Shown: positions 34,271 to 50,427 of the stretch, piece by piece
Layout: the number at the start of each line of letters is the position of its first letter
Numbering within the stretch: the first letter of the stretch is position 1
Sequence record: LR535910.1
Length of the DNA: 64,000 nt
Strand: one strand, 5' to 3'
Notes under the pieces: generated by a model
Database searches by the model: none
What the model saw: the letters and a program-made list of their open reading frames with translations, nothing else
Told to the model about the DNA's origin: nothing
Program-made: the position numbers and the translations under genes

Positions 34271-34320
34271 AAATAAAAGGTACCTACCTCCCTTCGGGGA
34301 GGTAGGGCCTTTATTTTCTT
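34271..34320. terminator. Bidirectional terminator closing the minus-strand fibre/radical SAM operon
   Basis: AAATAAAAGG-TA-CCTACCTCCC-TTCG-GGGAGGTAGG-G-CCTTTATTTT. Confidence 0.85.
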
Positions 34321-34323
34321 TGC

Positions 34324-34995
34324 TTACATGCCGAGTGACTCGGACAATGTTTTTAATCCAGTGTAATCGCGCTTTTCAGCTAACTCACGGATTTGGCGTT
34401 TGTTATCTGCCATTGCTGAGTGCAACACTTGGTCACGTGCAACAATAGCGGCCAGCAACGCTTTACATTGGGCTACTGTAAACGGACTGTGCTTAGTATT
34501 CAGCGTATCGAGCCAGTATTCTGGTGCGGTATCTGCCTGAATGTATTGACCGAGGATGGTACGCGACGATTCATCGGCTTGAAAGTGACTACCTTCAAAC
34601 TCGATATAACCATGGCGCTCATCTTCGTAGCGGTGGTCGAGTTCCAACAGCATCTTCTGCACGTCTTCGTAAATGTAACGTGCGGTAGATTTCAGATTCC
34701 CGCGAATTTCGTCGAGGTCAATCTCCAGCACATTAGCAATAAACTCTTTCGTGCGTTTCAATGTGAAGTTAGCTTCAATCTCCGACATCTCATACAGCTT
34801 CATGCGTGCCAGGGCTTCTTTATCAGACATCCCTTCGATGAGATGGTAATGGAGTAATGCACAAAATCCGGTACGGCCCTGATCCTGCGCACCGATTCGT
34901 TCCATGAAATTACCGTGACGATCAATCGGCAAATCACGCTGGAAATAACGGGCGCGGATCTCTTCGTTCGTTAAGCTTTTGTCAGTAACAGACAT
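34324..34995 (-). CDS. DUF4376 domain protein (tail-fibre-assembly type)
   Basis: C-terminal GYIEFEGSHFQADESSR...YWLDTLN...FTVAQCKALLAAI pattern. Confidence 0.65.
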   Translation of the reverse strand: MSVTDKSLTNEEIRARYFQRDLPIDRHGNFMERIGAQDQGRTGFCALLHYHLIEGMSDKEALARMKLYEMSEIEANFTLKRTKEFIANVLEIDLDEIRGNLKSTARYIYEDVQKMLLELDHRYEDERHGYIEFEGSHFQADESSRTILGQYIQADTAPEYWLDTLNTKHSPFTVAQCKALLAAIVARDQVLHSAMADNKRQIRELAEKRDYTGLKTLSESLGM

Positions 34996-35537
34996 TCGTC
35001 CTCCTCAATCAGGCCAAGTTCTAACAACAAACCGAAGTCCAGCATCTGGAAGTCCTGATCGAGGTTACCGGCCCACAACAGAGAAATGTTGTGTTGCTCT
35101 TCTTCTTCCAACTGCGGGAGCAGGTGTTCTTCGAAGATTTGACGCTCTGTGTAATAAGCGTCAACCGGGTTATTGGAGCGTAAGTTACGAATACGCATCC
35201 GCGGGAATGACAAGCCCAACGCCACTAAACTTTCAGGACTGGCTTCATCAATAGAGTGACGTAGCAGTTCGATTTTGTGGCGTGGGTATGCAAGCAGTCG
35301 CTTCTCAAAGCCAGGGTTGCGCTTTTCGATTTCCGCGACAGACTCGTGTCCTTTCTCAACGCAGTAGACCGGGATCATCACATTCAGCCCGTATTTAATC
35401 AACAGGCTTTGGATTTCATCAGTGAAGTCTTCCCCTGCCACAATTGCGTGCACATTGTACAGCTTGCTTTTGCGCAGGAAGCGATCGACCAAGTGCAGTT
35501 TACGCTTCGTAAAATTGTGAATCAGTATTGACTTCAT
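34971..35537 (-). CDS. Unknown protein of the radical SAM cluster, 188 aa (start reassigned)
   Basis: GGAG RBS before the ATG at 35537; overlaps both neighbours. Confidence 0.7.
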   Translation of the reverse strand: MKSILIHNFTKRKLHLVDRFLRKSKLYNVHAIVAGEDFTDEIQSLLIKYGLNVMIPVYCVEKGHESVAEIEKRNPGFEKRLLAYPRHKIELLRHSIDEASPESLVALGLSFPRMRIRNLRSNNPVDAYYTERQIFEEHLLPQLEEEEQHNISLLWAGNLDQDFQMLDFGLLLELGLIEEDECLLLTKA

Positions 35538-36828
35538 TCTGGGCTCCGTTTTGTAATTTTTCTGCTTCAGCACGTTGGCGTACACAACGTGAACAATAGC
35601 ACATGGATTTATCATGCAAATCTGATGCGCGAGTCGTACCAGTTTTCTGATACCAATATTCCGCCGCCATCAGCTTCGCAGTAGTCCAACCACACTGACG
35701 ACGCTCGGCGTGATACGCTTTACGGTCTTCCAGTGTACCTTCACCGTTTTCGTACGATGCTGCTGCGCAGCTACCGCAGCTGTGTTTCATCGGACACCCT
35801 AAACAGGTTTCTGGGTAGTTGGTGTACTGCGTTTGAATCTCTTCTAACAGCTTACCACCGTCCAGGCTCACAAACTCACGACCGACCAGTTCTGCTACAG
35901 CAGAACGGGAAGTTACCGTGGACATGAAACGGTTACAACCGTAAATCTTGCGATCAAAGCCGAGACAGGTCATGTGCGTCAACGTACCGCAGTACGGTTT
36001 CAGGCGTTCTGGGTCGAGACGAACAGAGTCGTCATGTAAGAGTTTGTCACGCCAATCCGGGTCCCAAGTTGCCATAAAGTTCAGGCCATCCGGGATGATG
36101 TGCGTAATCGTGTTACGCGGGTTGGTGTGCAGACCCTTCTCAATCCAGTAGTCCATCACGTCCATCATCTGGTTCGCGATATCCAACGCCATATGGCGCG
36201 GCAGGATATCTTCGTACGTTACGTTACCAGAAATGGTACCACCGCCGGACATGTCAATTAACGATTTCATGCTGGCGGCATAGTGCGGCAATGTATCGAT
36301 CGTAAACGTCGCCTTTACGCCCAGCTCAGCGATGCCAACACTCTTCAGGTAATTGTAACCGCGTACCGCAGCTTCGTACGACCCTTCACGCGTCGTGGTA
36401 AAGATACGATATTTGTCATGGACTTCAGGTAAACCATCGATGGAGACCCCAATAGACAGTTTGTCTTTCCAGCGCTCGATAATTTCTTTGTTCAGCGGAC
36501 GGTCCAGAAGCGTACCGTTCGTGGAGATACTGAACATATACGGGCGATTGTGTTCTGCGCATAACTTCTCTGCGGTTTCAAAGGCCGCCAAAAGAAGTTT
36601 AGGCTGCATGAACGGCTCACCACCGATGATATCGATGATGACTTCAACGTTCGGGATATCTTTATCACGCTCGAAACAAGCGTGGATAAAATCAATCACG
36701 TCTGCTACTTTGTTGTTACGCGGATATTTACGCTCGTAGCAGTATTCGCAGTCCAGGTTACATGACAGGTTAGTCACAACCTGATACGTGCGTGGTGTGT
36801 ACTGGATTTGCTGTTCGCTATTACTCAT
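35500..36828 (-). CDS. Radical SAM enzyme with SPASM-type C-terminal domain (putative peptide maturase)
   Basis: CNLDCEYC (CX3CX2C), GGEP, SISTNGTLL, VSIDG; auxiliary Cys motifs YCGTLTHMTCLGFDRKIYGC and CLGCPMKHSCGSC...QC; extra C-terminal CYCSRC. Confidence 0.9.
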   Translation of the reverse strand: MSNSEQQIQYTPRTYQVVTNLSCNLDCEYCYERKYPRNNKVADVIDFIHACFERDKDIPNVEVIIDIIGGEPFMQPKLLLAAFETAEKLCAEHNRPYMFSISTNGTLLDRPLNKEIIERWKDKLSIGVSIDGLPEVHDKYRIFTTTREGSYEAAVRGYNYLKSVGIAELGVKATFTIDTLPHYAASMKSLIDMSGGGTISGNVTYEDILPRHMALDIANQMMDVMDYWIEKGLHTNPRNTITHIIPDGLNFMATWDPDWRDKLLHDDSVRLDPERLKPYCGTLTHMTCLGFDRKIYGCNRFMSTVTSRSAVAELVGREFVSLDGGKLLEEIQTQYTNYPETCLGCPMKHSCGSCAAASYENGEGTLEDRKAYHAERRQCGWTTAKLMAAEYWYQKTGTTRASDLHDKSMCYCSRCVRQRAEAEKLQNGAQNEVNTDSQFYEA

Positions 36829-37735
36829 TGTTCGCCGCCCGTTTACGCTTAGCAGAAATTACACGGTTGATGTAGTTATACGCATCAACGCCGATAGAAC
36901 GCGCCAGGCGATTACAGCCGACTTCCAATATCTCTGGGGCGTTCTGAATTTGCTCCTGCGTACCGTCGGCGTTAAGCCACAGCACTTCACTGCACGTGTT
37001 GCACTCGGTATCGAACATTTTACTGATTGCAAGCCCACATTCAGAATCGTTCTGCATGTTAAGGCGTTCGATATTGTCGAGTATTTTCCAATACCCGTAC
37101 ATGAAGTTCATGACGTGGTCTGGCGATAACGGTTTCGGCATCATCGCATCAAACAACAACGACACACCACCTGGACGGTAATGATAGATTGCTCGGTGCA
37201 GCTCGATGAAATCTTCGTACCAGCGTTTATCACCTAACTGGTCACGCGTCATCACACCCCAGGTGTAATAGTTGTCCAGCTCGTACAGCACTTCCAGCGC
37301 TTCGTGATTACCACCGTTTACAAAGTTCATAAACGGACGTTCCGACTTCTTGTAGCCGTCAATGGACACAAAGATAAGGTCGAACTGTTTCAGCAACGGC
37401 AGATGTGATTTACGCATCTTTAAACCGTTGGTGTACATGTGATGACGGAGGTTCGGATGAGACTCCTTCAACTCGTTCACGAAGTCTTCAATCTTGCGCT
37501 GCGCTAACAGCGGCTCACCGCCCGTCCAATGAATCTCACCGATATCCGGATTCTTCTCTAAAATCGAGAGAATCTCTTCACGTTGAAACTCACGAGAAGT
37601 ATCTTCTCTATCCATGTAATAAGCCCCTCCACAGAAGCTACAGTCTAAGTTACACTTAGAAGTTGCGACAACCGACAGAATTGACGGTTTGTCGTACAGT
37701 TCAGACGAGATCCTGGATTCTACTTGATCTGTCAT
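36821..37735 (-). CDS. Second radical SAM protein (short auxiliary domain; start reassigned)
   Basis: CNLDCSFC, WTGGEPLL, MYTNG, VSIDG; C-terminal C...CNTC...C; GGAG RBS before the ATG at 37735. Confidence 0.85.
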   Translation of the reverse strand: MTDQVESRISSELYDKPSILSVVATSKCNLDCSFCGGAYYMDREDTSREFQREEILSILEKNPDIGEIHWTGGEPLLAQRKIEDFVNELKESHPNLRHHMYTNGLKMRKSHLPLLKQFDLIFVSIDGYKKSERPFMNFVNGGNHEALEVLYELDNYYTWGVMTRDQLGDKRWYEDFIELHRAIYHYRPGGVSLLFDAMMPKPLSPDHVMNFMYGYWKILDNIERLNMQNDSECGLAISKMFDTECNTCSEVLWLNADGTQEQIQNAPEILEVGCNRLARSIGVDAYNYINRVISAKRKRAANNE

Positions 37736-37757
37736 TGCAGGTTGCTCCAGTATATTT

Positions 37758-38645
37758 TTAAATATAATCAATGGCGAATAAAGGATCTTCGTCTACGTTA
37801 GCGCCAGGCACCAGTAGCATCGGGTCGTGATAGGCAGCTAAAATTTTGTTCAGGTCGGCGTGTCTTTCGTTCAGACGTTTCAAATCGGCCAACGTTACCG
37901 AACGACCACGAATCTCAGAAACAGCTTCTGCTTCTTCTTTCGTTAAATCCACCTTCGTTAAGAGGAAACTTACCAGCTTACTCAAATCCGCTTCCGTCGC
38001 CGGATAATCCCCATATCGGGTTTGAACCAGATGTTGCATCCACGGTTTACGAATACGTTTGGTGATTTCGAAATCGTCAGTCAGTGCATACCAGACAGAA
38101 CGCTTTTTATCCCACACGAACTTATAGCTATACGCCATCATGTCCGCTAAACGGGTGATGCCGAGTTCTTTATACCCCTCGATATCGATGTATGGTTCGG
38201 TGTCGAAATACGTTTCCGTATCGGCAGGTACCAGTACAAAGTAGTAAGGGAACGAGCCCAGATAGTCCGGACTCCACCAACGGCGCGCCATCGGTTTTGC
38301 TTCCAGTTCGTCAAACGGTGTAAACATCAGTTCTAAATCGACGCTGTTGTTCAAAATCCCTTCACTGAAGAAATACTTACCGTCGACTAACACGCCACGA
38401 GAGTTACCATCGCCGTTAAAGATAACGATGGCCTCTGCAACCATATCACGGATCTTAAACGTATTTTCTACGGTGTAGTTCTTCTTGTCGGTCAAGAAGC
38501 GACCACGAACCTTTGGCCACTCACCAGGAATCTGTGCAATCAGTCTGACTTTGTCAGCGAGGTGTGCACGCACTGAATCTGGGGAAGATAGATGCAGCGG
38601 GTGGTTGAATGTGGTTTTATACGCAAGATGCAAATCGTTTTTCAT
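37758..38645 (-). CDS. Unknown protein between the Cys-rich peptides and the radical SAM genes, 295 aa
   Basis: GGAG RBS; co-oriented; no motif recognised. Confidence 0.75.
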   Translation of the reverse strand: MKNDLHLAYKTTFNHPLHLSSPDSVRAHLADKVRLIAQIPGEWPKVRGRFLTDKKNYTVENTFKIRDMVAEAIVIFNGDGNSRGVLVDGKYFFSEGILNNSVDLELMFTPFDELEAKPMARRWWSPDYLGSFPYYFVLVPADTETYFDTEPYIDIEGYKELGITRLADMMAYSYKFVWDKKRSVWYALTDDFEITKRIRKPWMQHLVQTRYGDYPATEADLSKLVSFLLTKVDLTKEEAEAVSEIRGRSVTLADLKRLNERHADLNKILAAYHDPMLLVPGANVDEDPLFAIDYI

Positions 38646-38667: not shown

Positions 38668-38874
38668 TTATCGATTCCCCGCTCCACGGCTACAGCTTCC
38701 GCTGCAGGACCAGCTACACCCACCATTACAGTTATAGTGAGAAAGCGGTAAGCCAGCCAGGTTATTTGTGGTCGACACGGTGCCCTGGTTAGCGATATAG
38801 TTGTTTGCCTGTGCGGTTGTAATGTAACCTTCTACCGTAACGAGACGGTTTCGAATAGTCTTGAGACTGATCAC
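38668..38874 (-). CDS. Cys-X3 repeat peptide 3 (short core, 4 Cys)
   Basis: Leader MISLKTIRNRLVTVEG, core NCNGGCSWSCSGSCSRG; GGAGG RBS. Confidence 0.8.
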   Translation of the reverse strand: MISLKTIRNRLVTVEGYITTAQANNYIANQGTVSTTNNLAGLPLSHYNCNGGCSWSCSGSCSRGAGNR

Positions 38875-38885
38875 ATAAGCCTCCG

Positions 38886-39287
38886 TCAGTTAGGACCTGA
38901 ACAACCACCAGAACACGCGCCGGAGCAGTTTGCGGAGCAGGATTTGCCACAGCCGCCAGAGCAGTTACCAGTACACGTTCCGCTACAACCACCAGAACAT
39001 GAAGAGCTGCAACCCGTACAGCTGCTGCTACAGCCCGATACACAGTTTGCGGAACAAGTCGACCCACAACCACCCGTAGCAGACCCAGTACACCCGCCAG
39101 AACAACTCGAGCAACTAAAAGAGCATGTGCCACCACAGTCATAGTGCGAACGGCCTTGACCTGCGAACAAGTCGGCGTTATTCGTAGCTTTATTGCGAAT
39201 GTAGTTTTGCACATTCGTGGTGTTCTTTAAAGCGTTTGCATCGATCGTGTTTAATCGGTTATTCAGTTCTTTTAATCCAATTGCCAT
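38886..39287 (-). CDS. Cys-X3 repeat peptide 2 (20 Cys), putative radical SAM substrate
   Basis: Leader MAIGLKELNNRLNTIDA; core DCGGTCSFSC...CSGACSGGCSGPN; GGGGG RBS. Confidence 0.85.
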   Translation of the reverse strand: MAIGLKELNNRLNTIDANALKNTTNVQNYIRNKATNNADLFAGQGRSHYDCGGTCSFSCSSCSGGCTGSATGGCGSTCSANCVSGCSSSCTGCSSSCSGGCSGTCTGNCSGGCGKSCSANCSGACSGGCSGPN

Positions 39288-39297
39288 TTAATCCCCC

Positions 39298-39690
39298 TTA
39301 GCGACCTGAACAGCCGCCGGAGCAGGCCCCGGAGCAGTTTGCGGAACAAGAGCCGCCGCAACCACCTGAACAGTTACCGGTACAGCTACTACTGCAACCA
39401 CCAGAACAACCAGAGCAACCAGAACAGTTACCGCCACACGTCGAAGAACAGCTACCGATACAAGAAGCAGAACAGCTTCCTGAACAGCTCGAACAGCCAT
39501 GCGAGCAACCGTTAGAGCACGTCCAAGAACATGTCCCGCCGCAATCTAGCTGTGCTTTCGTCCAACCCCCAAATCGGTCTGCTGCATTATGGGCTTTAGA
39601 GGCCACTTGCGCCTCGATGCGGGGGCCTGTCGCCATGTTAGCTTCGACTATCTGGACGCGGTTTCTGACGTCTTTAATAGATATCGCCAT
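39298..39690 (-). CDS. Cys-X3 repeat peptide 1 (21 Cys), putative radical SAM substrate
   Basis: Leader MAISIKDVRNRVQIVEA; core DCGGTCSWTC...CSGACSGGCSGR; AAGGA RBS. Confidence 0.85.
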   Translation of the reverse strand: MAISIKDVRNRVQIVEANMATGPRIEAQVASKAHNAADRFGGWTKAQLDCGGTCSWTCSNGCSHGCSSCSGSCSASCIGSCSSTCGGNCSGCSGCSGGCSSSCTGNCSGGCGGSCSANCSGACSGGCSGR

Positions 39691-39755
39691 TACGCTTCCT
39701 TAAAAAGTAGAACGAGCGGACTATGTCCATAAACATAGTCCGGCTCGTAAACAAG

Positions 39756-40958
39756 TTACTTAGTACCCGCTTCAGCTTGAACATCGTCGCGCGAGGTGAG
39801 GTTGTTGTTGACGTGAACAGCAGCCTGCACAACACCTCCATACTGTTTATGGAGGTAATTCGGGTGTGGGTTATCCGCAGCCGCATGGTTCGCCAGATTC
39901 TGGTTTGCCTGCGAAATTGCGTTGGTGTTGTTTATAACCTGAGTTTTAAGACTGTTGATTTGTCCTTGCAGGTTATCAATTTGCTGTTGGAAGTCTTTGC
40001 CCTGATTCTCAAGATCCGTGACGCGCTGATTTGTTTCATTCAGTGCAGACTGAAGATCGTTAACCATCTTCTGTAATTGCAACACCAGAGAATTAAGGTT
40101 AGCTAATGCTAACGACATTTTCTGGTAATTTTGAGCAACCACGTTAAGCTGGTCGTTCCACGCGGCTAACGAAGCCACAATTGCATCGATGCGTTGCCCC
40201 AACGCCGTGTCTGCTGCTCTTAAGTCGCCGATATCGTTGATAGTGGCGTCAATGGCAGTCTGTACACTTTGAATCAGGGCACGAATCTCCGTCTCCGTCA
40301 GGCCATTAACCTGATGAATGTCGAGATTGTGTACGTTACCTTCGGCGTTGATGTGGGTATTTAAGGCGTCGAGGAAGTCGTTTCTCAGACCGTCCAGAAT
40401 ACCTTTAATTTCTTCCAGCTGTACTGCAGAGCCGGAGTTAATCGCATCTTTAATCCCCGCGAGTACGGTAATGATATACTCAAAACCGTAGATATCGCCA
40501 AGGTCTTTATACGTCGGGGCGGACGGGAACGTATCGGGTACGTTTCGAAGATCCTTGAAGTCCACCACACGGTCTTCAATTTTCAGCGACGCGATCGCTT
40601 GTCGGATACCTTCGACGTTCGCGGACTGAAAACCACCAACGACTTGCGCAGAGACTTCGATATCAGTAGGAATGGCCGAGTTAGTTACCACCACACCCAT
40701 GACCACTTCGCGGTTCTTGGTCATTTTCTGATATGCAGTATGTGCAAAAATCAGTTCGTAGTCTGTGCCGCGTTTATACGGGTAGACACCTGGTTTATTC
40801 GCAGCTGCCAAGCGGAAGGTATCCGCGTAGAAAGCTCCGTCAGGAAAAGCAAAAGCCCGGTTAACTTTACCAGAACCTAACGTAATACGCCGTGTAACGG
40901 CGTTCGACGTTAATGTCCCGGTAAGGTCGAGCGGGTACTGATGAATGATTTCGGCCAT
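39756..40958 (-). CDS. Short tail fibre or whisker-like protein with long coiled coil (start reassigned)
   Basis: YPLDLTG..SN attachment-type N-terminus shared with the giant fibres; HINAEGNVH and HAAADNPH repeats; heptad coiled coil in the C-terminal third; AGGAG RBS before 40958. Confidence 0.7.
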   Translation of the reverse strand: MAEIIHQYPLDLTGTLTSNAVTRRITLGSGKVNRAFAFPDGAFYADTFRLAAANKPGVYPYKRGTDYELIFAHTAYQKMTKNREVVMGVVVTNSAIPTDIEVSAQVVGGFQSANVEGIRQAIASLKIEDRVVDFKDLRNVPDTFPSAPTYKDLGDIYGFEYIITVLAGIKDAINSGSAVQLEEIKGILDGLRNDFLDALNTHINAEGNVHNLDIHQVNGLTETEIRALIQSVQTAIDATINDIGDLRAADTALGQRIDAIVASLAAWNDQLNVVAQNYQKMSLALANLNSLVLQLQKMVNDLQSALNETNQRVTDLENQGKDFQQQIDNLQGQINSLKTQVINNTNAISQANQNLANHAAADNPHPNYLHKQYGGVVQAAVHVNNNLTSRDDVQAEAGTK

Positions 40959-41005
40959 TGCCAAACTCCTTTGATTGGGGCTTCCTTGCCCCATAGCGCT
41001 ATCTG

Positions 41006-44000
41006 TTAGGTACGGAACATAAGATTGACCTGGATAATATCAGGCTGTTGACGTCCTCTCTCGTTCACCCAATCGTGCGCAATCGTTAACGTAAGATCAT
41101 CGCCATCCCACGCCACGATCGGTGGTGGGAATAAACCCTGAGCGCCCGTGGTAACAACCGGGATTGCACCTGTCACATTCGTAAACGTGTAGCTACGACT
41201 GTTCAGAACAACTGGTGTGCCGTTGGTCTCTCCCGGCTGTGGTAAGATTTGAATCTTACTATCCGAAAGATCGGTGGTGATTGGTAGTCCCCCAGCGTCA
41301 GTGAAAAGCCAAGAGCAAATATGCTGGTTAGCTGTTTCGAGCGCTGAAGAACTTACCGCCGCGACAAATGTAAAGGTGCACGGCACGCCTGCTGGCAGAG
41401 AGTGCTGTTTGTGGTGCACGGTATGTGGTGACGGCAATAACACTTCTGGATTTTCGTCAATGTTAACATCCGTACCTTCCGCCTCGACGTTGTAGAAAAA
41501 GCCATCCACCGCCTCCCATGGGGCAACGTGGACATTAAAGGTCGTTTCTACTCCCGGTGTACCTGGGACGACGAATTTACTTTGCACCACCACCATCAAG
41601 TTCGTTGAGGTCGGTGAGAAAGCGGGCGTTGGAATACCTACCCACTCCATTCCCAACGATGCCGCTTCACCGTTCTCATCAGCCGTTACCGTCGCGATTG
41701 TTGTAGGATGTTTCCAAAACGCCCCCGATTTGTTTGCCTGAGTAAACGCCGGCAAAGTTTTCAAGCCTTCGAAACGTTTGGACACCATCGCTTTACCGCG
41801 ACGCTGTGCGTCAGATACGGTATAAAGCAACTGACTATCCAGATAGCCTTTCGTAGCATCGATCGACAAAGGACCCATCGCTTCTTTACGCAATGGTGCC
41901 AGTCTGCCCGTTGCTGCATCCCTTCCCACTTCCACATCATGCTTATTCTCAACCGCCGCATGTTCCAACAGTTGTTTCACCGCCCCCAATCGCTTAGCAT
42001 GTTCGACGTTAGTCTCGACGACTCGCGACGAGCCCGTTTTAACATACCCGATATAGAGTTCCGTTTCAGTGTCTGGATGTTGAATCACGTCCATTACGTA
42101 CTTCGGTGTACCATTTTCTACCTTGGCGTGCAGGTAGAATGTCCGGTTCTGATGGTTTGTTGGAAATGCTGCGCTGAGGTCAATATACCACGTAGGCAGC
42201 TTATAAGTGCTCGAGCCGAAACGCAGGTCAACTTCCTCAGTCACATATACCAGCCAACCTTCGGCTGTTTCCACACCAGCAATGACGACCGATTCAGTCG
42301 GGCCACTAAAATTAGGAGCCGCGACAAAATCACTCGACGACATTGCGATACCACCACAATAGACGTAGTCGAGAGATGAGTTGTGTAGCATCACCTGATC
42401 ACGATGAGCCAGATAAGCTGGGCTGACTGGAGTGTGGGATGGTGCCATGCGTCCAATGCCGTGTGGAGCAGAAGAACGCGTCCAGGTACCGTTAGACAGC
42501 GTAAGACCAACACCGTAGTTAAGCGCACCCAAGTCGCCAATTTGGCGCAAGGTTAACGTGTGTGGAAGATACAACCCGAACTGAGTACCATCTACTGACA
42601 CCAGTGTAGGTTGTCCCGGCCGGCGTGTTTTTCCTCCCGTTATCTCGCCCAACGTAGCATAGTTCAAGCCGTAGTCGAGGTTGTTATAGAAGTCAAACAG
42701 TGCCAATATCGCTGCGGGGAATGTTACCTGCCCGTTGCTGATCGTTGGTTTCAGTGTAAAGTAGTAGATATCCAACACGTTAACATTGTTCACAGTACGC
42801 ATACATGCTACTTGTGCTAACGTGAGCGGTGTGGCCGTACCAATGCCGATGAACCAAATGGAGAACAGTGCCTTTCCGGCGTTATTTGCGGCAAGGATAA
42901 ATTCCGAAGCATAACCATTCGCAGCGCCAGCCGGTGCACCGTCGATGATCATCTGCTTCATCTTATCCCATTCGGCTTGTGACAGCGTCAACCGATCGGC
43001 ATGAATCGTGAAAGTGCCAGAAACGTTGTGGTAAGGGAATGTTTCTGGTCCTGTGCAATACCAGCCGTTTAACTCTGTACCAGGCGACGCCGGTGTAACA
43101 ATGTGGCACATCTGCGACAGATTCTCGTACGTGGTAGAATCTACTACACGACGATTGTTAGTTGGTCCATACCCCGCTTTACCTGAATAAGTGGTGTTCG
43201 GATCAAACTCAACTTCAATTGCCAAACGGGTACGCGGCTGTGACAACCAGATAAGTCTGGAATTCGCTCCCAGAGTCAGCGGATACGCCATGCCCAGCTC
43301 GTAGATAGAACCACGACCTTGGTTTAACATTACCGCACTAAAACTTCTGGCAGTGAAGTTGTAGTCGCACGACAGGTACTCGTACCAACTCACACCGTCA
43401 TCTAACGTTGTAATCGTGACATAAGGCATTAGGTCGCGATCGCCTGCATGTCCTTGCGAAACGATATACTTGTCTTGCGATGTTGCAAAGGTTCGGTTAT
43501 TAGCTTGACCTTCGCCCCATTTCCGGCTCGGAATCCCAATCTCAGCGCCACCGTTATAACGAACCGTGGTAAGATCGGCCACAATAGGGAATCGATCAGC
43601 ACCTTCCAGCGTTATCGTCATTGAACTACAATCAACAACAAAGCTTGACACCCATTGTTTAAAGTTAATAGTTTGCCCTGTAGTAGAAGCAAACCAAACC
43701 GTTGGAGTTAAACCAACACGAAAGTTCAGCCCATCCACACCAATCGCGTGATTACATTCCGGACCATGGACGAAATTTCGCGCACTATTCCACTTCGCCG
43801 ATGCGTCTGCGTAGATTTGTGTTACTGGCGCTACCAACACATCTGTATCAGAACGTTTCTGACCCTGACGCAAGTAGATATTATCTCCCGACGTTAACAT
43901 CCCACCTGTTAACACATCCGCCACAAACGTGTTGCTACCACCCAGATTAAGTTCGTCGAGTGCGATGCTACGCATACTCACGAAATAGTCACCGGAGGTA

Positions 44001-46189
44001 AGCACAGTACGGAGCAGATAAACCCGCTCGTTGCAAACGATCAAATCGTTTGTTGATGGATCAACAACCCATGGAGCGGTTGTAATCACACCGGCCGCGT
44101 TACCATTTCGGTAATCGCCCAACTGAACTTTAACAACACGATGATGTTTTGCATGGTCAATGGTGCCGTCAAAGATGACCAGGTAGTACGCACCGTCACT
44201 GCCTAAGCAGATCATTGCATCTGTACCGGTAATCACAATAGCAACCAGATTCACCCCAGGATACGCCGACATTCCAGCGGGTCGATAACGTACGGACGTC
44301 TGCTGCATATTTTCCAGCGTATTGCTTGGCGACACATCAGCATAGGCGTAATAGATAGCCCAGTCACCTGGTGGATTCCCGTTAGAACCGTTACGGAGCG
44401 AGTAAACCTTACCAGACTCGTAACGCGCCAAACCTTTCTGCCAGGTTTGGTTTTTGGTATACCCTTCGTAGTTCCCCTGGACTGGTATAGGCAAGAAGTT
44501 ATTGTTGCCGTACGATGATCCGCCGACAGTCCACGCCGGTAATAACGTACCAATCTTGTCATTCAGTGTGTCAATCTTTTGTTCAAGCAAGAAGCCCTGA
44601 CGCGAAGTGACCATCTTATCCGAGGTAGTGTCGATTGCATCCCACAGTTTAGCCAAACCTGTAACAGACGTGGATGCGTACGGCACGTTATCGAGATCTG
44701 CAATGGTGTGGGTGTGCGTTGTAAGCGCTTTGCCTGATAGCACGGTACGCAATGCGTTAGTAACTGGCTTTTCTAACGGTCCGGTATTGTCCATTTTCTC
44801 AATACCGAAATCTGCCGCGGTTAAGGTCAGATGCATCTGCCCGTTTGCGTCTAACACAAACCCTTTACCATTGACCGTATACGTGTCGTCCACATATCCG
44901 TCGAGTTTGTTCTTCAAGTCAGTAACAGCTTTTTGGGAAATCGCTGTGGACGCTGCAGCGGATGCCGAGAGGTTAGTAATCGCAAACAAACCCTGCACAG
45001 TTGTGGTTGCTGCAGGCAGCTCCGCATTCATGTAAACTTTGTTTGTTTCTTTACCAGAGCCGTAAATCTTCAACGTGTCGCTGGACTTGAAGTAGGCGTT
45101 TGCTGGAAGTATCTTCACCGAGGTCAAGTACATCTTAACCATATCCGGTGTAACGAGATACACGCTGTTATACACAGGTGCAAGCACACCTGCATCATAA
45201 GCGCCCCACTTGTCACCTGCTTTACCCGAGTGAACCCAAAGCGTGTTCAGACCAGCACTGAACTCCGTAGCGATACCCGGTTCGTTGTTATCCTGGTCAG
45301 CTTTTAATACCAGCGGTTTTGTCGAGGTGATAATGAACTTCTCACCTTTCATGCTGATAACGTGACCGGACGTTGTTTGGAATGTAATTGCGTCGTTATT
45401 CAGAACACGCATACGGCCCAGTAAATCACCCAGGGTATTATCCAGAAGCATGTCAACATGTTTCTGTTGGATACCGCTGGTAGACATTAGCGTCACTAAC
45501 TCTGCCAGTGTACGTCCAAACGCTTTAGTCGCATCCACGGCCTTACCGAGCACAGGGAGTGCGCCAATGTCACCGCAGGTGTAACCATGTGCATTTTTAA
45601 TCAGGTGGTGTTGATACATTTCGTCATCAAACACCTGTTTACCGTTCTGATAAATCAAATCGGTAACTTCGGCAAATGCCTCATCTAGTTCGTGGGCGCG
45701 CTCTAAAATACCCAGACGGATATCTTCCAACGCCTTTACGATTTCATCGCGAAGAATCGCTTCTTCGAGATCTTTTGGCGGGTCGATTGGCGAAATAATC
45801 GGCGGATATTTCATCAGCTCAGACCAATCGCAGTTGCGCGGGTCTTTCATATCCGTCTTAACCAGATACTTGCCGATTTCAGAAGCAGGGATGCGATACT
45901 GTCGACCAACCGACAACAACTCGTATTCTACCTCTGTGGCGTTCAGCAGCATTATGCTGCCGTATATTGCATCGTTCTCAGCCTCGGCTAATTCCTGGAA
46001 GTAATGTCCTAAGAAATAATCAAGACCTTCTATTAACTTACGTTTGGTTCCGGTTGTTTTATCGGTAACTGTTAACGTTAACCCGATGCGATAGAACGGT
46101 GCTTCGACGGGAATGACCGTCGAATAACGGTTCGGGTAAGTAGCGGTACTGAGGGTACCGTTAAACTGCGCCGCATCTTCTCTCGGCAT
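41006..46189 (-). CDS. Giant tail fibre protein, about 1727 aa (start reassigned)
   Basis: AGGAG RBS before 46189; APFY...G.DY N-terminus; ATTTVQGL and ASTSVTGLAKL fibre repeats; NPH-like motifs; beta-rich distal domains. Confidence 0.75.
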   Translation of the reverse strand: MPREDAAQFNGTLSTATYPNRYSTVIPVEAPFYRIGLTLTVTDKTTGTKRKLIEGLDYFLGHYFQELAEAENDAIYGSIMLLNATEVEYELLSVGRQYRIPASEIGKYLVKTDMKDPRNCDWSELMKYPPIISPIDPPKDLEEAILRDEIVKALEDIRLGILERAHELDEAFAEVTDLIYQNGKQVFDDEMYQHHLIKNAHGYTCGDIGALPVLGKAVDATKAFGRTLAELVTLMSTSGIQQKHVDMLLDNTLGDLLGRMRVLNNDAITFQTTSGHVISMKGEKFIITSTKPLVLKADQDNNEPGIATEFSAGLNTLWVHSGKAGDKWGAYDAGVLAPVYNSVYLVTPDMVKMYLTSVKILPANAYFKSSDTLKIYGSGKETNKVYMNAELPAATTTVQGLFAITNLSASAAASTAISQKAVTDLKNKLDGYVDDTYTVNGKGFVLDANGQMHLTLTAADFGIEKMDNTGPLEKPVTNALRTVLSGKALTTHTHTIADLDNVPYASTSVTGLAKLWDAIDTTSDKMVTSRQGFLLEQKIDTLNDKIGTLLPAWTVGGSSYGNNNFLPIPVQGNYEGYTKNQTWQKGLARYESGKVYSLRNGSNGNPPGDWAIYYAYADVSPSNTLENMQQTSVRYRPAGMSAYPGVNLVAIVITGTDAMICLGSDGAYYLVIFDGTIDHAKHHRVVKVQLGDYRNGNAAGVITTAPWVVDPSTNDLIVCNERVYLLRTVLTSGDYFVSMRSIALDELNLGGSNTFVADVLTGGMLTSGDNIYLRQGQKRSDTDVLVAPVTQIYADASAKWNSARNFVHGPECNHAIGVDGLNFRVGLTPTVWFASTTGQTINFKQWVSSFVVDCSSMTITLEGADRFPIVADLTTVRYNGGAEIGIPSRKWGEGQANNRTFATSQDKYIVSQGHAGDRDLMPYVTITTLDDGVSWYEYLSCDYNFTARSFSAVMLNQGRGSIYELGMAYPLTLGANSRLIWLSQPRTRLAIEVEFDPNTTYSGKAGYGPTNNRRVVDSTTYENLSQMCHIVTPASPGTELNGWYCTGPETFPYHNVSGTFTIHADRLTLSQAEWDKMKQMIIDGAPAGAANGYASEFILAANNAGKALFSIWFIGIGTATPLTLAQVACMRTVNNVNVLDIYYFTLKPTISNGQVTFPAAILALFDFYNNLDYGLNYATLGEITGGKTRRPGQPTLVSVDGTQFGLYLPHTLTLRQIGDLGALNYGVGLTLSNGTWTRSSAPHGIGRMAPSHTPVSPAYLAHRDQVMLHNSSLDYVYCGGIAMSSSDFVAAPNFSGPTESVVIAGVETAEGWLVYVTEEVDLRFGSSTYKLPTWYIDLSAAFPTNHQNRTFYLHAKVENGTPKYVMDVIQHPDTETELYIGYVKTGSSRVVETNVEHAKRLGAVKQLLEHAAVENKHDVEVGRDAATGRLAPLRKEAMGPLSIDATKGYLDSQLLYTVSDAQRRGKAMVSKRFEGLKTLPAFTQANKSGAFWKHPTTIATVTADENGEAASLGMEWVGIPTPAFSPTSTNLMVVVQSKFVVPGTPGVETTFNVHVAPWEAVDGFFYNVEAEGTDVNIDENPEVLLPSPHTVHHKQHSLPAGVPCTFTFVAAVSSSALETANQHICSWLFTDAGGLPITTDLSDSKIQILPQPGETNGTPVVLNSRSYTFTNVTGAIPVVTTGAQGLFPPPIVAWDGDDLTLTIAHDWVNERGRQQPDIIQVNLMFRT

Positions 46190-46221
46190 TGCAAACACTC
46201 CTAATCTGTAATAAAACGGAG

Positions 46222-46275
46222 ACCGCCCTCCCAATAACGGAAGGGCGGTTTACCTACGGACTACCCGCCCGTAGG
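46222..46275 (-). terminator. Tandem hairpins between two fibre genes (terminator or processing site)
   Basis: ACCGCCCT...AGGGCGGT and CCTACGG...CCGTAGG stems; TTTTATT follows on the minus strand. Confidence 0.5.
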
Positions 46276-46284
46276 CAGTCCGTC

Positions 46285-49200
46285 CTAAGAGGCCCACTCA
46301 CCCGAGTTGTTGCCTTCGTTTCTACGTTCAGTATCCAACGTTTGTAAAATCCAATCCCATGTCCTGGTGGGGATGTGGAATGGATTACGCTTCTCAATGA
46401 GAATCGTCTCGCCACCCGTGCGAAGTTCCACCGGTGTCGTTTCAGTAATCACGAACATCGGATTACCACTACTACCCACACCATTAATAGTGAACTTCGC
46501 TTGCAGCGGCGGCACAGAACCTTCCGGAGGCACGAACACGATGTGAATTGGCTGCATCGGTTTCGTGCGGGCAAGAATCCCAGATATCTGAACAGCTGTT
46601 GTCGATGCACTGAAAGGTATAACATTACCCGGAATTTTCTCACTACCCACGATGATATATCCAGGGTAGTTAGAGAGCATTGTCCCATTTACCGACACAA
46701 AACGCTCATTTTGAGTTGGGCGATAAGCCCGCATAAAGCCGTACTTCCATTCACCACCGTTAGACGTATAGTCTGCAGGAGCCGACTCAAGTAGCGGAGC
46801 ACCACGTTTCTGCAGCCCTTTGTAAAACGGCGCGGGGAGTTTACCGTTCGGTGCAAGTTCCGGATAACCCTCACTTGCAGCAGACATCGTGATGTATTCC
46901 GTAACCGGGTTATCGACGTTATCTCCAAAGTTCGCGAACTCGACGGTTGATATCGACATCTCCTCATGCCCAGAAGACTGGCTGTCCGGAGAACGCTCAA
47001 TATACGACTCAAATAGCGAGCGTAGATAATGGAAACGATTTAAATCTACTTCTGTTGTGGAAGGGTCCATCAAACCGTGGTTGATTGTGACGCCTTCACC
47101 AGTTTCGATGCCAGTAACACCAATCGATAAAGCGCCGCCTTTAAAATAATCAATCGCGTCAAACGGAAGGTCGTATTCTATCTCACGAATAGTTGCCGAA
47201 GCCTGGCCGCCTATCTTACTAATCGACGATATTCGCAGTATCTGCGTATCAACAATATAGCGATAACGAATAAGCCAGCGCGAACCAATGGCTGCGAACT
47301 CGCTAGCGATTGAAACCGGGAGATAGTCTAAACAGTCGGGCGACTGAACATCCACGCTCTTGATTACACGAGGAGCATCAACCAGCGTATTAGTAACGCT
47401 GGATTGTGTGGTGGCAATTCTTCCGGTTGGTTTATCGTACGGCGCAGCAATAAAGCCGCAGTTTAAACTGGTGTGGGAGTTACTCCACCGCAGGACTCTG
47501 GTTTTACCTTTCCCATCAGCAGAAGGGGCCATGAAGTTTAATGAAACTTCGACGTCCGAGGTTTTTGGGACTTCAGGATAATCAGTGTCGATTACCACCG
47601 AACCCTCGAATGTCGCCATTCCATTTTCTTTCGGGTTGCTTGGTGTAAACCAGCAATACGGGGACGCGTTTTCAGTGGAAACAACCGCCGCAAGAAGAAT
47701 CCTGAGCGAGGTGGCACTTACGAATTTATAATCAAATAACCCACGATCTAAACGAACGAGGTTATCCCCAGAAACAGACGGGTTAGTTGGATACGCATAC
47801 AGCCATTGTTTAGGTAATGGATCAACCTTATTCAACGGCAGCATTTTCGGGTTATCCGTCAACGACCAGTCGGTGTTACTCACCCCGTGTGCTAGACGTG
47901 TTTCGAAGTGCCGTTTAAGTTCGGACGCCATGCCGAAGTCAAACGTCGTTTCAAACTCGTAAGTCGTGCCTGCAACCAATCCCGCGTCAGGGACATCGAT
48001 GTGGCCGATATAGCCGCGTTCCAAGTTAATACCTTCCGTGTCCACAATAGGTTCGGCGCGCGAATATAACGCATCGGTTATCATGTTCACATAGAGGTAA
48101 TGCCTTAAACCGTTCGGCGTCTTAACAAACTCCTGCAGGCGGGCAACTTTGGTGTTTTTATCCGAGGCCCCAACCGCAAAGTCACCGTCGTAAATTGTGA
48201 AACGAATTGCGGCTGCTTTAGCGCTATCGTTACATTCTGCACGGAATGCTAAGCAGTGTTGCTTCCACCCCTCCTTGACAGTCGCCTCCAGATACCCCGC
48301 TTCTGTAATACCCGCACCGATTATTTCGCCGTCCAGATAAACAGAAACAGCACCACCGCCACGAACCCAAATCCGCAGCTTACCAGAGTCGCAACGAACC
48401 CACGTTTTCGCCAAGAGGTTAACGACCGACAAATCACCCATTCCAGTTGTCGTTAAACCAATCTGCGCACCGTAGTCCGTTTCCGGGACAGCAACCTCAA
48501 ACCCACTAAAATCAATACCGGCACCGGTATTAATTACCGCGTTCTGCCACGTTCTTTCCATACGGTTATCTGGAGAGAACCACTGGAACATCGGTGTGGT
48601 TTGCAGGTCTATCGAACCAGATACCGTCCCCTCTTTACGTGCACCATTTAACAGATAGAAATAATTCAAATCCGTTACGGCGAGGGTGGTACGTGTAGAT
48701 CCCACAGTCCAAGTCTTACCACGCACAGCGGCAAAATCGGTCACGGAATCCTCTTTCGCGTTTGCTAGCGCAGCTGCAACTACGTCTAAACGTTTTGACA
48801 GATCGTTCAGAACGTTCGGGGTAACGCCGCGATTATCCGACAAGCCGTTTAGGTTGGTAGAATATCGAGCGATACCGGGAACTGTTTGAGAAGCCGTTGG
48901 GATCTGTAAATCGGCGAAGTTGTGATGGTGACCTTTATCACTAAGACCGGTAACTGCTTCTGCCAACGCATCAGAAAGTGGTTTATCGACGTCAGCTGTG
49001 TTATCAGCCAAGTCCAGACCCAAATCCTTTTTCGTTAGCGTTCGGCTACCAGTGTCCATCGGCTGGTTATTCAGCAGCGTTGTCTTCCGGACGTACGAAG
49101 ACAGATCACCCTCGTACGGTAAGAGCGAAGCTGGGGTGACTGCTTGTCCCTTGACTACATCGCTCGGCTTATCAGTCAGCGTCACAACGCCGGGTTCAGA

Positions 49201-50415
49201 GGTCGTCGCGGGTTTGGCTGTGACCTTCCCGGTGACGGGATCGGCTTTTGACCCTTTACCCGTGAAAGTAATGCCGTTCACCCCGCTAATGTACAGTTTG
49301 TTGTCATCCGGGTCAACGGTACCACCGCCGGTACCAGGGTCTTGTTGATAGCCCATGAGAGCAGTTGTGGTCAGTAACGTCGTACCATTAAGCGTCAGCT
49401 TATCCATCCCCAAGGCACTGCCAGTCGACTCAATACGTAATGTATTGATGCCTGCTTTCCACTCCATAAACCGGGTGGTTCCAGTAGTGTCGGCATACCC
49501 ACACGCCAACACAACAGAGCCATTAGATTTAAGAGTGAATGCCTCAGCAGAGAACACAATTTCGGATTCACCAGCAGGAGAACGGAACAGGGCACGAGTA
49601 CCGGATATCGTCGCATTAAACACCCCTTTGGATTCCTTCGATACCCATTTAGAAATGTACTTGTCGATATCCGATTGTTGCAGACCCAGTGCACGGACCT
49701 CGCTGGTTAACTGACGCAACGTCTTTCCATACGCCAGGAAAGTATCTGGCGTTTTTAGGTTGACAGGATGCGCACCGGCCTGCGCCGCGGTAGTCCCATG
49801 AGGGTTAGTCGACGCAATGTGTCCGGGGTAGTTAAATGTGGCGATTTCAGTTCCTAAGCCCAAAACCGCATCTTTCAGCTCAGTAAGCTTTTCACGAATC
49901 TGCTCGTTGGCCGCCCCGGCATCTAACTCCACATCATGCACTGCAGAGGCAACATACTTTTTATTCAGCATGTCTGACCAAGCTACCGCTGCAGGGGTGG
50001 CTGGGTAAAGGGAAGGTCGATTACCTAAAAGCAGCCAATCTGCAGCCGTTGGGTTGTTGAGAGCCTTAATTAGCTCATCCAACATCTCAATCAAACCACT
50101 GTAAAACGTACCCCCGAGCATCTGGCCTTCAAAGACCACCGCACCACGCAGTTTAGGGTTAATAAGATGCACCCCGCAAAACACCGGGGTCGTCACCGAG
50201 TCGTCCAACGGTGTTAAAGCATACTCCAGCTCATAGTCCGTCCCGCGGGTAAGCGGTATGGACGAGCCGGCGAGCCTTACCACCAATCCTTCGAAAAACG
50301 GGCGATGATCTAGCATCACCACCCGATCGTTAGGATTGTCGGAGTCGATGATACGTTCCTCGATGAAGTGACACTCAGGATTTACACCCCGAGGATCGTA
50401 AGGATACGTTTTCAT
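46285..50415 (-). CDS. Giant tail fibre protein, 1376 aa
   Basis: YPYDPRG N-terminus, PFF...GTDY, HIASTNPHGTT, ATTSEPGVVTL, LGLDLADNTADVDKPLS fibre repeats. Confidence 0.75.
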   Translation of the reverse strand: MKTYPYDPRGVNPECHFIEERIIDSDNPNDRVVMLDHRPFFEGLVVRLAGSSIPLTRGTDYELEYALTPLDDSVTTPVFCGVHLINPKLRGAVVFEGQMLGGTFYSGLIEMLDELIKALNNPTAADWLLLGNRPSLYPATPAAVAWSDMLNKKYVASAVHDVELDAGAANEQIREKLTELKDAVLGLGTEIATFNYPGHIASTNPHGTTAAQAGAHPVNLKTPDTFLAYGKTLRQLTSEVRALGLQQSDIDKYISKWVSKESKGVFNATISGTRALFRSPAGESEIVFSAEAFTLKSNGSVVLACGYADTTGTTRFMEWKAGINTLRIESTGSALGMDKLTLNGTTLLTTTALMGYQQDPGTGGGTVDPDDNKLYISGVNGITFTGKGSKADPVTGKVTAKPATTSEPGVVTLTDKPSDVVKGQAVTPASLLPYEGDLSSYVRKTTLLNNQPMDTGSRTLTKKDLGLDLADNTADVDKPLSDALAEAVTGLSDKGHHHNFADLQIPTASQTVPGIARYSTNLNGLSDNRGVTPNVLNDLSKRLDVVAAALANAKEDSVTDFAAVRGKTWTVGSTRTTLAVTDLNYFYLLNGARKEGTVSGSIDLQTTPMFQWFSPDNRMERTWQNAVINTGAGIDFSGFEVAVPETDYGAQIGLTTTGMGDLSVVNLLAKTWVRCDSGKLRIWVRGGGAVSVYLDGEIIGAGITEAGYLEATVKEGWKQHCLAFRAECNDSAKAAAIRFTIYDGDFAVGASDKNTKVARLQEFVKTPNGLRHYLYVNMITDALYSRAEPIVDTEGINLERGYIGHIDVPDAGLVAGTTYEFETTFDFGMASELKRHFETRLAHGVSNTDWSLTDNPKMLPLNKVDPLPKQWLYAYPTNPSVSGDNLVRLDRGLFDYKFVSATSLRILLAAVVSTENASPYCWFTPSNPKENGMATFEGSVVIDTDYPEVPKTSDVEVSLNFMAPSADGKGKTRVLRWSNSHTSLNCGFIAAPYDKPTGRIATTQSSVTNTLVDAPRVIKSVDVQSPDCLDYLPVSIASEFAAIGSRWLIRYRYIVDTQILRISSISKIGGQASATIREIEYDLPFDAIDYFKGGALSIGVTGIETGEGVTINHGLMDPSTTEVDLNRFHYLRSLFESYIERSPDSQSSGHEEMSISTVEFANFGDNVDNPVTEYITMSAASEGYPELAPNGKLPAPFYKGLQKRGAPLLESAPADYTSNGGEWKYGFMRAYRPTQNERFVSVNGTMLSNYPGYIIVGSEKIPGNVIPFSASTTAVQISGILARTKPMQPIHIVFVPPEGSVPPLQAKFTINGVGSSGNPMFVITETTPVELRTGGETILIEKRNPFHIPTRTWDWILQTLDTERRNEGNNSGEWAS

Positions 50416-50427
50416 TCAAAAATCTCC

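Follow-up and report, generated by a model that had tools for sequence, protein, structure and literature searches.

The 64,000-nucleotide stretch of sequence record LR535910.1 analysed here (the window) belongs, judging by its sequence, to an SPN3US-like jumbo Salmonella phage (Seoulvirus, phiKZ-like), and carries on its minus strand a short tail fibre gene followed directly by genes for three Cys-rich proteins (pepA, pepB and pepC), an accessory protein and a pair of radical S-adenosylmethionine (rSAM) enzymes, one of them of the SPASM type. Taken as a whole, the data are best explained if the fibre is a trimeric shaft that lacks a tip of its own and the Cys-rich proteins, matured by the rSAM enzymes, make up its distal part, a reading to which we assign a probability of about 0.55. 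Such a fibre tip, matured by enzymes, would be of a kind not described before: its components (rSAM/SPASM maturases, Cxxx repeats and tail fibres) are of known kinds, and what is new is their combination and proposed role. A search of full-text literature, which did not extend to most subscription journals, found no account of tail fibres modified by rSAM enzymes and none of these peptides.

The fibre gene and its parts are located as follows.

39756..40958, minus strand: short fibre of 400 amino acids (aa), orthologue of SPN3US gp167 (98% identity)
40359..40958, minus strand: N-terminal tail-attachment-type domain, approximately residues 1-200, from homology and the AlphaFold2 model
39879..40295, minus strand: coiled-coil shaft, residues 222-360, predicted by AlphaFold2 as one nearly uninterrupted 139-residue helix
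39759..39902, minus strand: conserved C-terminal tail, residues 353-400, made of an NPH motif and ~35 further residues, from conservation

The open reading frame (ORF) spans 39756-40994 and encodes 412 aa; because relatives and the SPN3US annotation begin at Met13, the protein is taken to be 400 residues long (39756-40958), and the range 39298-40958 given for it in an initial annotation of this locus also spans pepA (39298-39690). The product matches PHROG 2163 ('virion structural protein', E-value (E) 4e-109), and SPN3US gp167 was detected in purified virions (25 unique peptides, 70% coverage), where it was not placed among the head proteins (PMC5694885 Suppl. Table 1). The protein thus has the hallmarks of a tail fibre, being virion-associated, sharing its N-terminal domain with other tail and fibre proteins and possessing an elongated shaft. 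Residues 72-227 are 27% identical (E 6e-7) to the 1376-aa product of a neighbouring gene, which supports an N-terminal domain in common with the giant neighbours and, with it, the fibre attachment N-terminus of the initial annotation; 197 records of phiKZ-like phages contain relatives of the first 228 aa, named 'minor tail protein' or 'short tail fiber protein'. In an AlphaFold2 model of a single chain, built from 23 homologues (mean pLDDT, the predicted score in the local distance difference test, 61.7), a β domain at residues 17-106 (pLDDT ~80) precedes the long helix, and the only Pfam and NCBIfam matches are of coiled-coil type (~235-375), in agreement with the long coiled coil first proposed. 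The last 40 residues are unstructured in the modelled monomer (pLDDT <50) and only ~35 residues follow the NPH motif; as had been claimed, the 400-aa protein appears to end without a globular tip, and no distal receptor-binding domain is evident in it. The 'HxxxxNPH repeats' described at the outset reduce to one exact HxxxxNPH just before the C-terminus, the other occurrence being a related HxxxxxNVH before the coiled coil, and do not form an array. A sequence search of the PDB with the fibre returned coiled-coil noise only, and Foldseek comparison of the model with the PDB gave nothing below E 0.04; scattered weak Foldseek matches to the N-terminal parts of podovirus fibres proved unusable, and these were not retained as structural relatives.

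Conservation of the fibre, expressed as the mean share of the commonest residue among 20 orthologues (down to 42% identity), is highest in the last 48 residues (0.76-0.80), intermediate in the N-terminal domain (0.68) and lowest in the coiled coil (0.45-0.57). Between Salmonella and Erwinia relatives the short fibre retains 60-80% identity, compared with 31-57% for its giant neighbours in the same genomes. Since a receptor-binding tip is expected to be the most variable part of a fibre, this tail rather resembles an interface with a conserved partner, and we propose that it is a joint and not a receptor-binding tip. Searched alone against 5.8 billion proteins, the tail matched only ~400-aa orthologues.

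A 65-nt spacer separates the fibre gene from the three Cys-rich protein genes, which do stand directly next to it, as first described.

39298..39690, minus strand: pepA, 130 aa with 21 Cys; N-terminal helix, junction motif, then Cys mostly at every fourth residue
38886..39287, minus strand: pepB, 133 aa with 20 Cys, with pepA-like architecture; corresponds to SPN3US gp166
38668..38874, minus strand: pepC, 68 aa with only 4 Cys and a GTG start; N-terminal helix and junction as in pepA and pepB

These are genuine genes, each preceded by a ribosome-binding site and separated by short spacers, and they are paralogous: all three share an N-terminal helix-like stretch (type MAIxLKxxxNRL) and a junction (type NAxxxxGxxxxxxxCxGxCSWxCS) that leads into a Cys/Gly/Ser repeat, and all match PHROG 6085, a family of unknown function (E 7e-40, 2e-41 and 3e-25 for pepA, pepB and pepC, respectively). 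Successive Cys residues are four positions apart in 17 of the 20 intervals of pepA (the other three being spacings of 3) and in 16 of the 19 intervals of pepB, so that the two are tandem Cys-x-x-x proteins of the kind that serves as substrate in the TIGR04114/TIGR04115 system; their TIGR04114 scores (18.4 and 16.4 bits) lie below the cutoff of 20, and pepC gives no match to the model. Cys, Gly and Ser occur in near-equal amounts, and the cores contain no Asp or Glu. The number of Cys is kept among relatives: 21 in pepA at each of the 18 loci that yielded it, 20-23 in pepB and 2-5 in pepC. In two SPN3US-like metagenomic contigs the usual 65 residues of pepC are extended, beyond the four-Cys knot, by ~140 aa (L196; P0110, 210 aa, 8001-8633) or ~80 aa (L197; P0136, 147 aa, 8001-8444), a part with no PHROG or PDB relative that is possibly a swappable distal domain. 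Such an extension fits an exposed distal end and is at odds with a core that is cut from its leader, as in a peptide made by the ribosome and modified after translation (RiPP). In locus L011 (9717-10628), and at the same position in L022, a third rSAM gene (303 aa, a paralogue of the small rSAM) lies between pepA and pepB.

The three maturation genes follow.

37758..38645, minus strand: accessory protein gp165, 295 aa, PHROG 8030
36821..37771, minus strand: small rSAM enzyme gp164, 316 aa as ORF, Pfam Radical_SAM (E 1e-15)
35500..36828, minus strand: rSAM/SPASM-type enzyme gp163, 442 aa, with a CxxxCxxC motif and C-terminal Cys clusters

The larger enzyme, gp163, matches Pfam Radical_SAM (E 1e-14) and has the make-up of a radical SAM/SPASM peptide maturase, with a CxxxCxxC cluster motif at residues 23-30 (Cys23, Cys27 and Cys30) and C-terminal Cys residues that are invariant across five orthologues (280, 288, 298, 342, 345, 351, 354 and 379); the Pfam SPASM model itself did not match at E <= 0.01. 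Its top NCBIfam model is the CXXX-repeat maturase TIGR04115 (125.6 bits, below the cutoff of 350), followed by PapB (113.6 bits). Because only 22 residues precede the cluster motif, gp163 has no N-terminal leader-recognition domain. The small rSAM shows full-length similarity to the small rSAMs of other cassettes, and its best NCBIfam matches, including HxsC, are all below cutoff. The accessory protein is confidently modelled by AlphaFold2 (pLDDT 88, predicted template-modelling (TM) score 0.83), matches no Pfam family and has no match in a Foldseek comparison with the PDB (best E 0.019, TM ~0.12); the model possibly represents a new fold, and the protein may play a role like that of a RiPP recognition element (RRE). 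Pfam, NCBIfam and PHROG scans of the nine block proteins detected no protease, exporter/transporter or immunity gene, and the RRE domain and the leader protease or exporter that mark a classical RiPP cluster are both missing.

What links the Cys repeat to fibre ends is its occurrence within fibre proteins of other phages. Six fibres that end in a homologous Cys repeat were checked in their genomic context (L049, L102, L103, L193, L194 and L195), in tail modules of P2-like, lambda-like and T4-like type; such loci were first found by a scan with the rSAM/SPASM enzyme, L193, L194 and L195 coming from a peptide profile search. L049, an AT-rich viral contig of 31 kb, has baseplate, sheath and tube genes of P2/Mu-like type (the latter two downstream of the fibre); its 384-aa fibre, which resembles numerous PHROG tail fibre families, has a Cys/Gly/Ser Cxxx repeat at its C-terminus and is followed by a 250-aa protein, an rSAM/SPASM enzyme (31% identical to that of the window, E 9e-62) and a small rSAM. 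The fibres of Desulfoluna butyratoxydans (L102, 257 aa) and Deferribacter abyssi (L103, 302 aa) are located downstream of a central fibre protein resembling lambda J and have, at their C-terminal end, the same junction motif and Cys repeat as the window peptides, followed by homologues of the small rSAM and the accessory protein and by rSAM/SPASM enzymes with 38-39% identity to gp163; the L102 fibre itself matches PHROG 6085 (E 1.6e-5), and its neighbour is a counterpart of the accessory protein (PHROG 8030, E 3e-11; BLASTP against the window protein, E 1e-6). In L193 (a lambda-like tail module followed by lysis genes), L194 (228 kb, where a neighbouring protein is T4 gp13-like) and L195 (with a Collar-domain fibre and an endolysin close by), the fibre that ends in the repeat stands directly upstream of the small rSAM, accessory protein and rSAM/SPASM genes, save that L194 has no recognisable accessory protein, the 224-aa neighbour at that position matching nothing. 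One fused fibre (P0137) carries a precomputed match to PF27846, and the rSAM/SPASM enzymes beside fused fibres are 31-39% identical to gp163 over their full length (E 1e-55 to 1e-89). A split arrangement comparable to that of the window is found in a Thalassospiraceae locus (L104), where a 607-aa tail fibre gene is followed by a 79-aa Cys protein and then by the three maturation genes.

A wider search points the same way. A profile of the three peptides gave 164 matches at E <= 1e-3 among 1.84 billion representatives; 53 of the best 150 of these contain the junction motif, which in 38 of the 53 lies at least 70 residues from the N-terminus, and ~30 of the motif-bearing matches are proteins of 185-560 aa that begin with diverse fibre-like regions and have the repeat as their C-terminal end. 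Phage fibres are attached through their N-terminus, so a module found invariably at the C-terminus corresponds to the distal end. The alignments start at profile positions 5-35, so that the N-terminal helix of the peptides aligns with the short coiled-coil segment that comes last in the fused fibres. All elements of this fibre-tip module are present in the window: a junction of the NAxxLxGxxxxxYxCxxxCSWxC type, a C-terminal Cxxx repeat and neighbouring rSAM, accessory and rSAM/SPASM genes. Because the fused fibres adjoin the same maturation genes, we regard the peptides as stand-alone copies of a widespread fibre-tip module rather than as classical secreted RiPPs. The suggestion of the initial annotation that they are separately encoded, enzyme-matured distal fibre parts is strongly supported by comparison in this respect, for a homologous repeat is the C-terminus of fibres encoded beside the same enzymes. 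At slightly less than even odds, we tentatively extend the picture to many unrelated phages (myovirus-like, siphovirus-like and jumbo), whose fibres would end in an rSAM-cross-linked Cys repeat that in SPN3US-like phages is split off as three mini-proteins capping gp167.

In the immediate relatives, fibre and cassette stay together. All 18 IMG/VR loci with a full-length fibre homologue contain, in the same order, the peptides, the accessory protein, both rSAMs, gp162 and gp161, and this gene order recurs in the GenBank relatives Stratton, Huxley, CR5 and Phobos and in metagenomic locus L112, fibre identity across these relatives falling to 45%. The expected co-occurrence across genomes is thus observed, and a fibre with the same C-terminus and no peptides, which would speak against the proposal, was looked for both in the relatives and among the 5.8 billion proteins and was not found. 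More informative are the nearest outgroup homologues (P0051 and P0052), which keep the N-terminal domain and coiled coil and have different C-termini. The contig of P0052 (L111, 250 kb) retains the layout of three giant fibres and one short fibre, and no peptide, rSAM, gp162 or gp161 homologue occurs in the 10 kb downstream of it; the P0051 contig ends ~600 bp past the fibre gene.

These observations can be combined into the following mechanism. The 400-aa protein would be a short trimeric fibre shaft with a phiKZ-like-type N-terminal domain, a coiled coil of ~140 residues and a tail acting as a joint, and the N-terminal helix of each peptide would be the counterpart of the last coiled-coil segment of the fused fibres. 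The (Cys-x-x-x)n repeat would be modified in the cytoplasm by the rSAM/SPASM enzyme and the small rSAM, aided by the accessory protein. To judge from the enzyme families, the former would introduce sulfur-to-carbon cross-links along the repeat (probably thioethers) and the latter would carry out a second modification step; the accessory protein would present the substrate, since gp163 has no leader-recognition extension of its own, and the junction motif is a good candidate for the recognition site because it is the most conserved element of the fused and split forms. The likeliest product would be a ladder of such links, by which the Gly/Ser/Cys stretch becomes a stiff, redox-insensitive rod. 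Once matured, the proteins may form the distal part of the fibre, their helices most likely docked on the conserved tail of the 400-aa shaft, a docking made plausible by the adjacency of the genes, the absent tip, the conservation of the tail and, in the outgroup, the different C-termini and missing cassette. We speculate that, with three strictly conserved paralogues, each trimeric fibre receives one copy each of A, B and C.

Several points weigh against this reading. For no named family do the enzymes and peptides reach the curated cutoff, and, with no Asp or Glu in the cores, the best-studied chemistry of PapB-type enzymes (Cys-Asp/Glu) cannot apply as such. The co-occurrence of fibre and cassette is weak evidence when taken alone, because the genomes form one syntenic clade and the cases are not independent. 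No fusion of a gp167-type fibre with a Cys protein exists among 53 homologues, all of which are 355-432 aa long, and in L104 the fibre encoded ahead of the split peptide seems to possess a non-repetitive C-terminal region of its own. The tail of gp167 could bind another partner, such as gp168-170 or gp161/162. Finally, a conserved terminator-like hairpin between the two genes could uncouple the expression levels of fibre and pepA.

39712..39748, minus strand: stable hairpin and then a U-run, after the stop codon of the fibre and ahead of the start of pepA (free energy -24.1 kcal/mol, z -3.6)

Hairpins occupy the same site in L003, L004, L005, L006, L010 and L016, with stems of differing sequence (z -2.8 to -4.7, each relative folded as a single sequence); RNAalifold found zero pairs in a MAFFT alignment of this intergenic hairpin, the arms being out of register. 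Acting as a leaky terminator or through RNA stability, the element could tune the ratio of fibre to cassette expression.

A further point against the reading is that gp161-166 are absent from the published list of SPN3US virion proteins (PMC5694885). This absence is weak evidence concerning the peptides, because pepA and pepC were not in the database and gp166 gives too few peptides: as annotated it yields two usable tryptic peptides, and the study required a minimum of three (PMC5694885). At full length, pepA and pepB would each give three N-terminal tryptic pieces free of Cys. Given these annotation gaps, we set absence from the virion proteome aside as an argument against presence in the virion. 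The gaps are general: in the SPN3US record (JN641803, 143169-144285) pepA and pepC are unannotated and gp166 (pepB) is 24 codons too short, and in most GenBank records of the group the three genes are missing or truncated, or antisense ORFs are called in their place. In the window itself, ORFs in other frames of the same strand have been called over the Cys-coding repeats (38789-39214 and 39288-39500), and opposite-strand calls across the repeats occur in Huxley, CR5, Phobos and L112.

The most serious alternative, which we consider unlikely though well above the other two, is that the peptides are rSAM-matured mini-fibres sited elsewhere, on the baseplate, on a giant fibre or as fibrils of their own, and that the gp167 tail binds another partner. 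The homology and fusion evidence identifies a fibre-tip module and not the shaft that carries it, the peptides bring their own N-terminal helix, and both the hairpin and the lack of a gp167-peptide fusion are as this alternative would have it. It leaves unaccounted for a 400-aa fibre that, as modelled, has no distal domain, apparently alone among the four fibre genes, that is encoded immediately upstream in every genome, and whose tail goes with the cassette, giving way to another C-terminus in the outgroup that is without it.

With lower probability, around one chance in ten, the Cys-rich proteins are metal or iron-sulfur binders, or transient assembly factors for the giant fibres, that are absent from the finished virion. 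Their near-equal Cys, Gly and Ser composition and the virion list would agree with this, and a metal-related role has been suggested for the rSAM-modified protein CrpA (PMC13692751); left unexplained are the distal fibre fusions in many phages and the constant company of two rSAMs and an accessory protein, as well as Cys numbers and spacings conserved in ruler-like fashion. Least probable of all is that they are classical RiPP precursors, from which a leader of ~48 residues is removed and a core with bacteriocin-like or metal-binding activity released at lysis, fibre adjacency being incidental: the leader-plus-core layout, the kinship of the enzymes with peptide maturases (TIGR04115, PapB and others), the location of most metagenomic enzyme relatives beside small Bacteroidales-type Cxxx proteins rather than fibre parts, and the non-detection of leaders in virions all speak for it, but fibre proteins of 185-560 aa encoded in tail modules end in this very junction and repeat, the supposed leader aligns with their last coiled-coil segment, pepC may bear a C-terminal domain of folded size (80-140 aa), and the block, which lies wholly within the tail gene region on one strand, has no protease, exporter or immunity gene and an enzyme devoid of an N-terminal leader-recognition extension.

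If the tip-less shaft with enzyme-matured distal peptides is the correct reading, several consequences follow. Tail fibres determine the targets to which phages attach, and the well-studied ones, to our knowledge, fold and assemble with the help of chaperones only; an rSAM-matured fibre tip would be a new principle of virion assembly, in which RiPP-type chemistry acts on a virion structural protein. It would provide a first biological role for the orphan 'CXXX-repeat' rSAM system and account for the presence of two radical-SAM genes amid the tail genes of giant Salmonella and Erwinia phages. Apart from this, three real genes are missing, truncated or placed on the wrong strand in most deposited genomes of the group, and because of this annotation gap the peptides have stayed outside the databases used for virion proteomics.

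The cassette forms part of a tightly packed minus-strand block that runs from 54141 to 34324 in the order gp170, gp169, gp168, gp167, pepA, pepB, pepC, gp165, gp164, gp163, gp162 and gp161, and closes with a bidirectional terminator-like hairpin at 34283-34306, after gp161. The genes that flank the fibre and cassette are the following.

41006..54141, minus strand: three giant fibre/baseplate candidates gp168, gp169 and gp170 (1742, 1376 and 1237 aa), virion proteins encoded upstream of the short fibre
34971..35615, minus strand: gp162, 214 aa as ORF, with the start in relatives near residue 27, PHROG 7988
34324..34995, minus strand: gp161, DUF4376 protein of 223 aa (Pfam DUF4376, E 1e-9), last gene of the block

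The giant proteins gp168-170 constitute paralogue family C, described as virion-associated 'baseplate/tail fiber candidates', and gp168-173 were likewise detected in purified SPN3US virions (PMC5694885). Neither these three neighbours nor the 420-aa neighbour has a Pfam match. gp162 was found in 18 of the 18 IMG/VR loci and gp161 is kept in all loci examined; no relative has the cassette without these two, and the outgroup contig L111 lacks them as it lacks the cassette; the pair may serve this system as additional assembly factors.

Between positions 35400 and 41100 the window shares 100% identity with SPFM4 and nine further SPFM phages; its identity to SPN3US is 97.9%. In SPFM1, 5-10, 12, 14, 15 and 20 (LR535901, LR535903-LR535908, LR535911-LR535913 and LR535917) the 5.7-kb region was matched as ~40 short pieces that span 43-44% of it at 99% identity, and the proteins appear fragmented in the protein database; these records look like error-rich assemblies rather than cases of true divergence. 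In LR535921 (SPFM2) automatic naming has produced 'Chromosome partition protein Smc' for the fibre and 'AlbA' and 'MoaA' for the two rSAMs, names that derive from coiled-coil and generic rSAM similarity and are for that reason not to be read as functions. Nothing on the receptor of SPN3US was found in the Salmonella receptor paper.

Beyond the phages, relatives of gp163 (~29% identity) occur in gut and rumen metagenomes, most of them beside Cxxx-repeat proteins with a twin-arginine-type signal; L123, L133, L144, L178, L182 and others contain arrays of up to six paralogous proteins of this kind that start with 'SRREFFK...'. The 'SRREFFK' sequence suggests modification in the cytoplasm followed by export. 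This gut and rumen form is the classical TIGR04114/TIGR04115 system. The enzyme family would thus serve at least two kinds of extracytoplasmic Cys-repeat product, of which the fibre tip is one branch. A further viral contig (L050 62-12243; IMGVR_UViG_3300032251_000001, 136 kb, 29% GC) encodes, amid six radical-SAM genes, two proteins (192 and 202 aa, Cys numbers 31 and 35), each composed of an N-terminal domain of ~95 aa and a dense, short-period Cys repeat; they adjoin a 557-aa protein with a Peptidase_G2 intramolecular-chaperone domain, which is typical of fibres and spikes, and may belong to a second, different enzyme-matured Cys-rich fibre system.

Among known systems, the parallel on which the initial annotation drew is gp38 of T2/T6-type phages, a small Gly-rich adhesin that sits on the tip of the long tail fibre gp37 and is encoded directly downstream of it. 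The peptides resemble gp38 in gene position and in the tip role proposed for them, but no sequence relationship was detected, and here three paralogues come with a maturation cassette whereas gp38, as far as we know, needs no dedicated enzymes. The analogy consequently holds for gene position only: no named adhesin family, the gp38 type included, was matched by the peptides in Pfam, NCBIfam and PHROG searches, PHROG 6085 being their sole match. PapB-type maturases (freyrasin; NF047865), which link Cys to an Asp or Glu four residues away, are second-best for the 442-aa enzyme, with an alignment over nearly the whole model (113.6 bits, below the cutoff of 340); their substrates share the four-residue register of Cys with those of the window, whose products are, in contrast, not small peptides.

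The best-scoring named families for both the window peptides and the 442-aa enzyme are those of the bioinformatically defined CXXX-repeat system (TIGR04114 and TIGR04115; PF27846, tSAM_targ_Cxxx_rpt), which like the window places a Cys at every fourth residue beside an rSAM/SPASM enzyme. The common bacterial form of this system has the twin-arginine-type signal 'SRREFFK' and arrays and is found on gut and rumen Bacteroidales-type contigs, whereas in the phage form the repeat either follows a fibre-type N-terminus or belongs to a fibre, and a second, small rSAM is present together with an accessory protein; a published function was found for neither form in the literature searched.

In the HXS system, the rSAM pair HxsB/HxsC matures the HxS-repeat protein HxsA for bacterial anti-phage defence (PMC13128918). 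As in the window, a large SPASM-type rSAM, a small rSAM and a small accessory protein act together, and the tandem-repeat protein works outside the cytoplasm (PMC13128918); the HXS models, though among the better matches of the window enzymes, score far below cutoff (HxsB 75 bits, HxsC 45 bits), the repeat is His-x-Ser instead of Cys-x-x-x, and the system is one of defence, not a structural module of a phage (PMC13128918). In Methanococcus voltae, the SPASM rSAM CrpC makes thioether 'ranthionine' cross-links on the Cys-rich protein CrpA (PMC13692751). Here too the substrate is a repeat-bearing Cys-rich protein rather than a short peptide and has paralogues with a common N-terminal region, but CrpC belongs to family TIGR04463, has a leader-recognition domain and stands in no virus or fibre context, and the CrpA repeats are 17 residues long with C-x-x-Q/D acceptors, unlike the window cores with their four-residue period and no Asp or Glu (PMC13692751). 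Both CrpA/CrpC (PMC13692751) and HxsB/HxsC (PMC13128918) are precedents for the maturation of whole proteins by rSAM enzymes.

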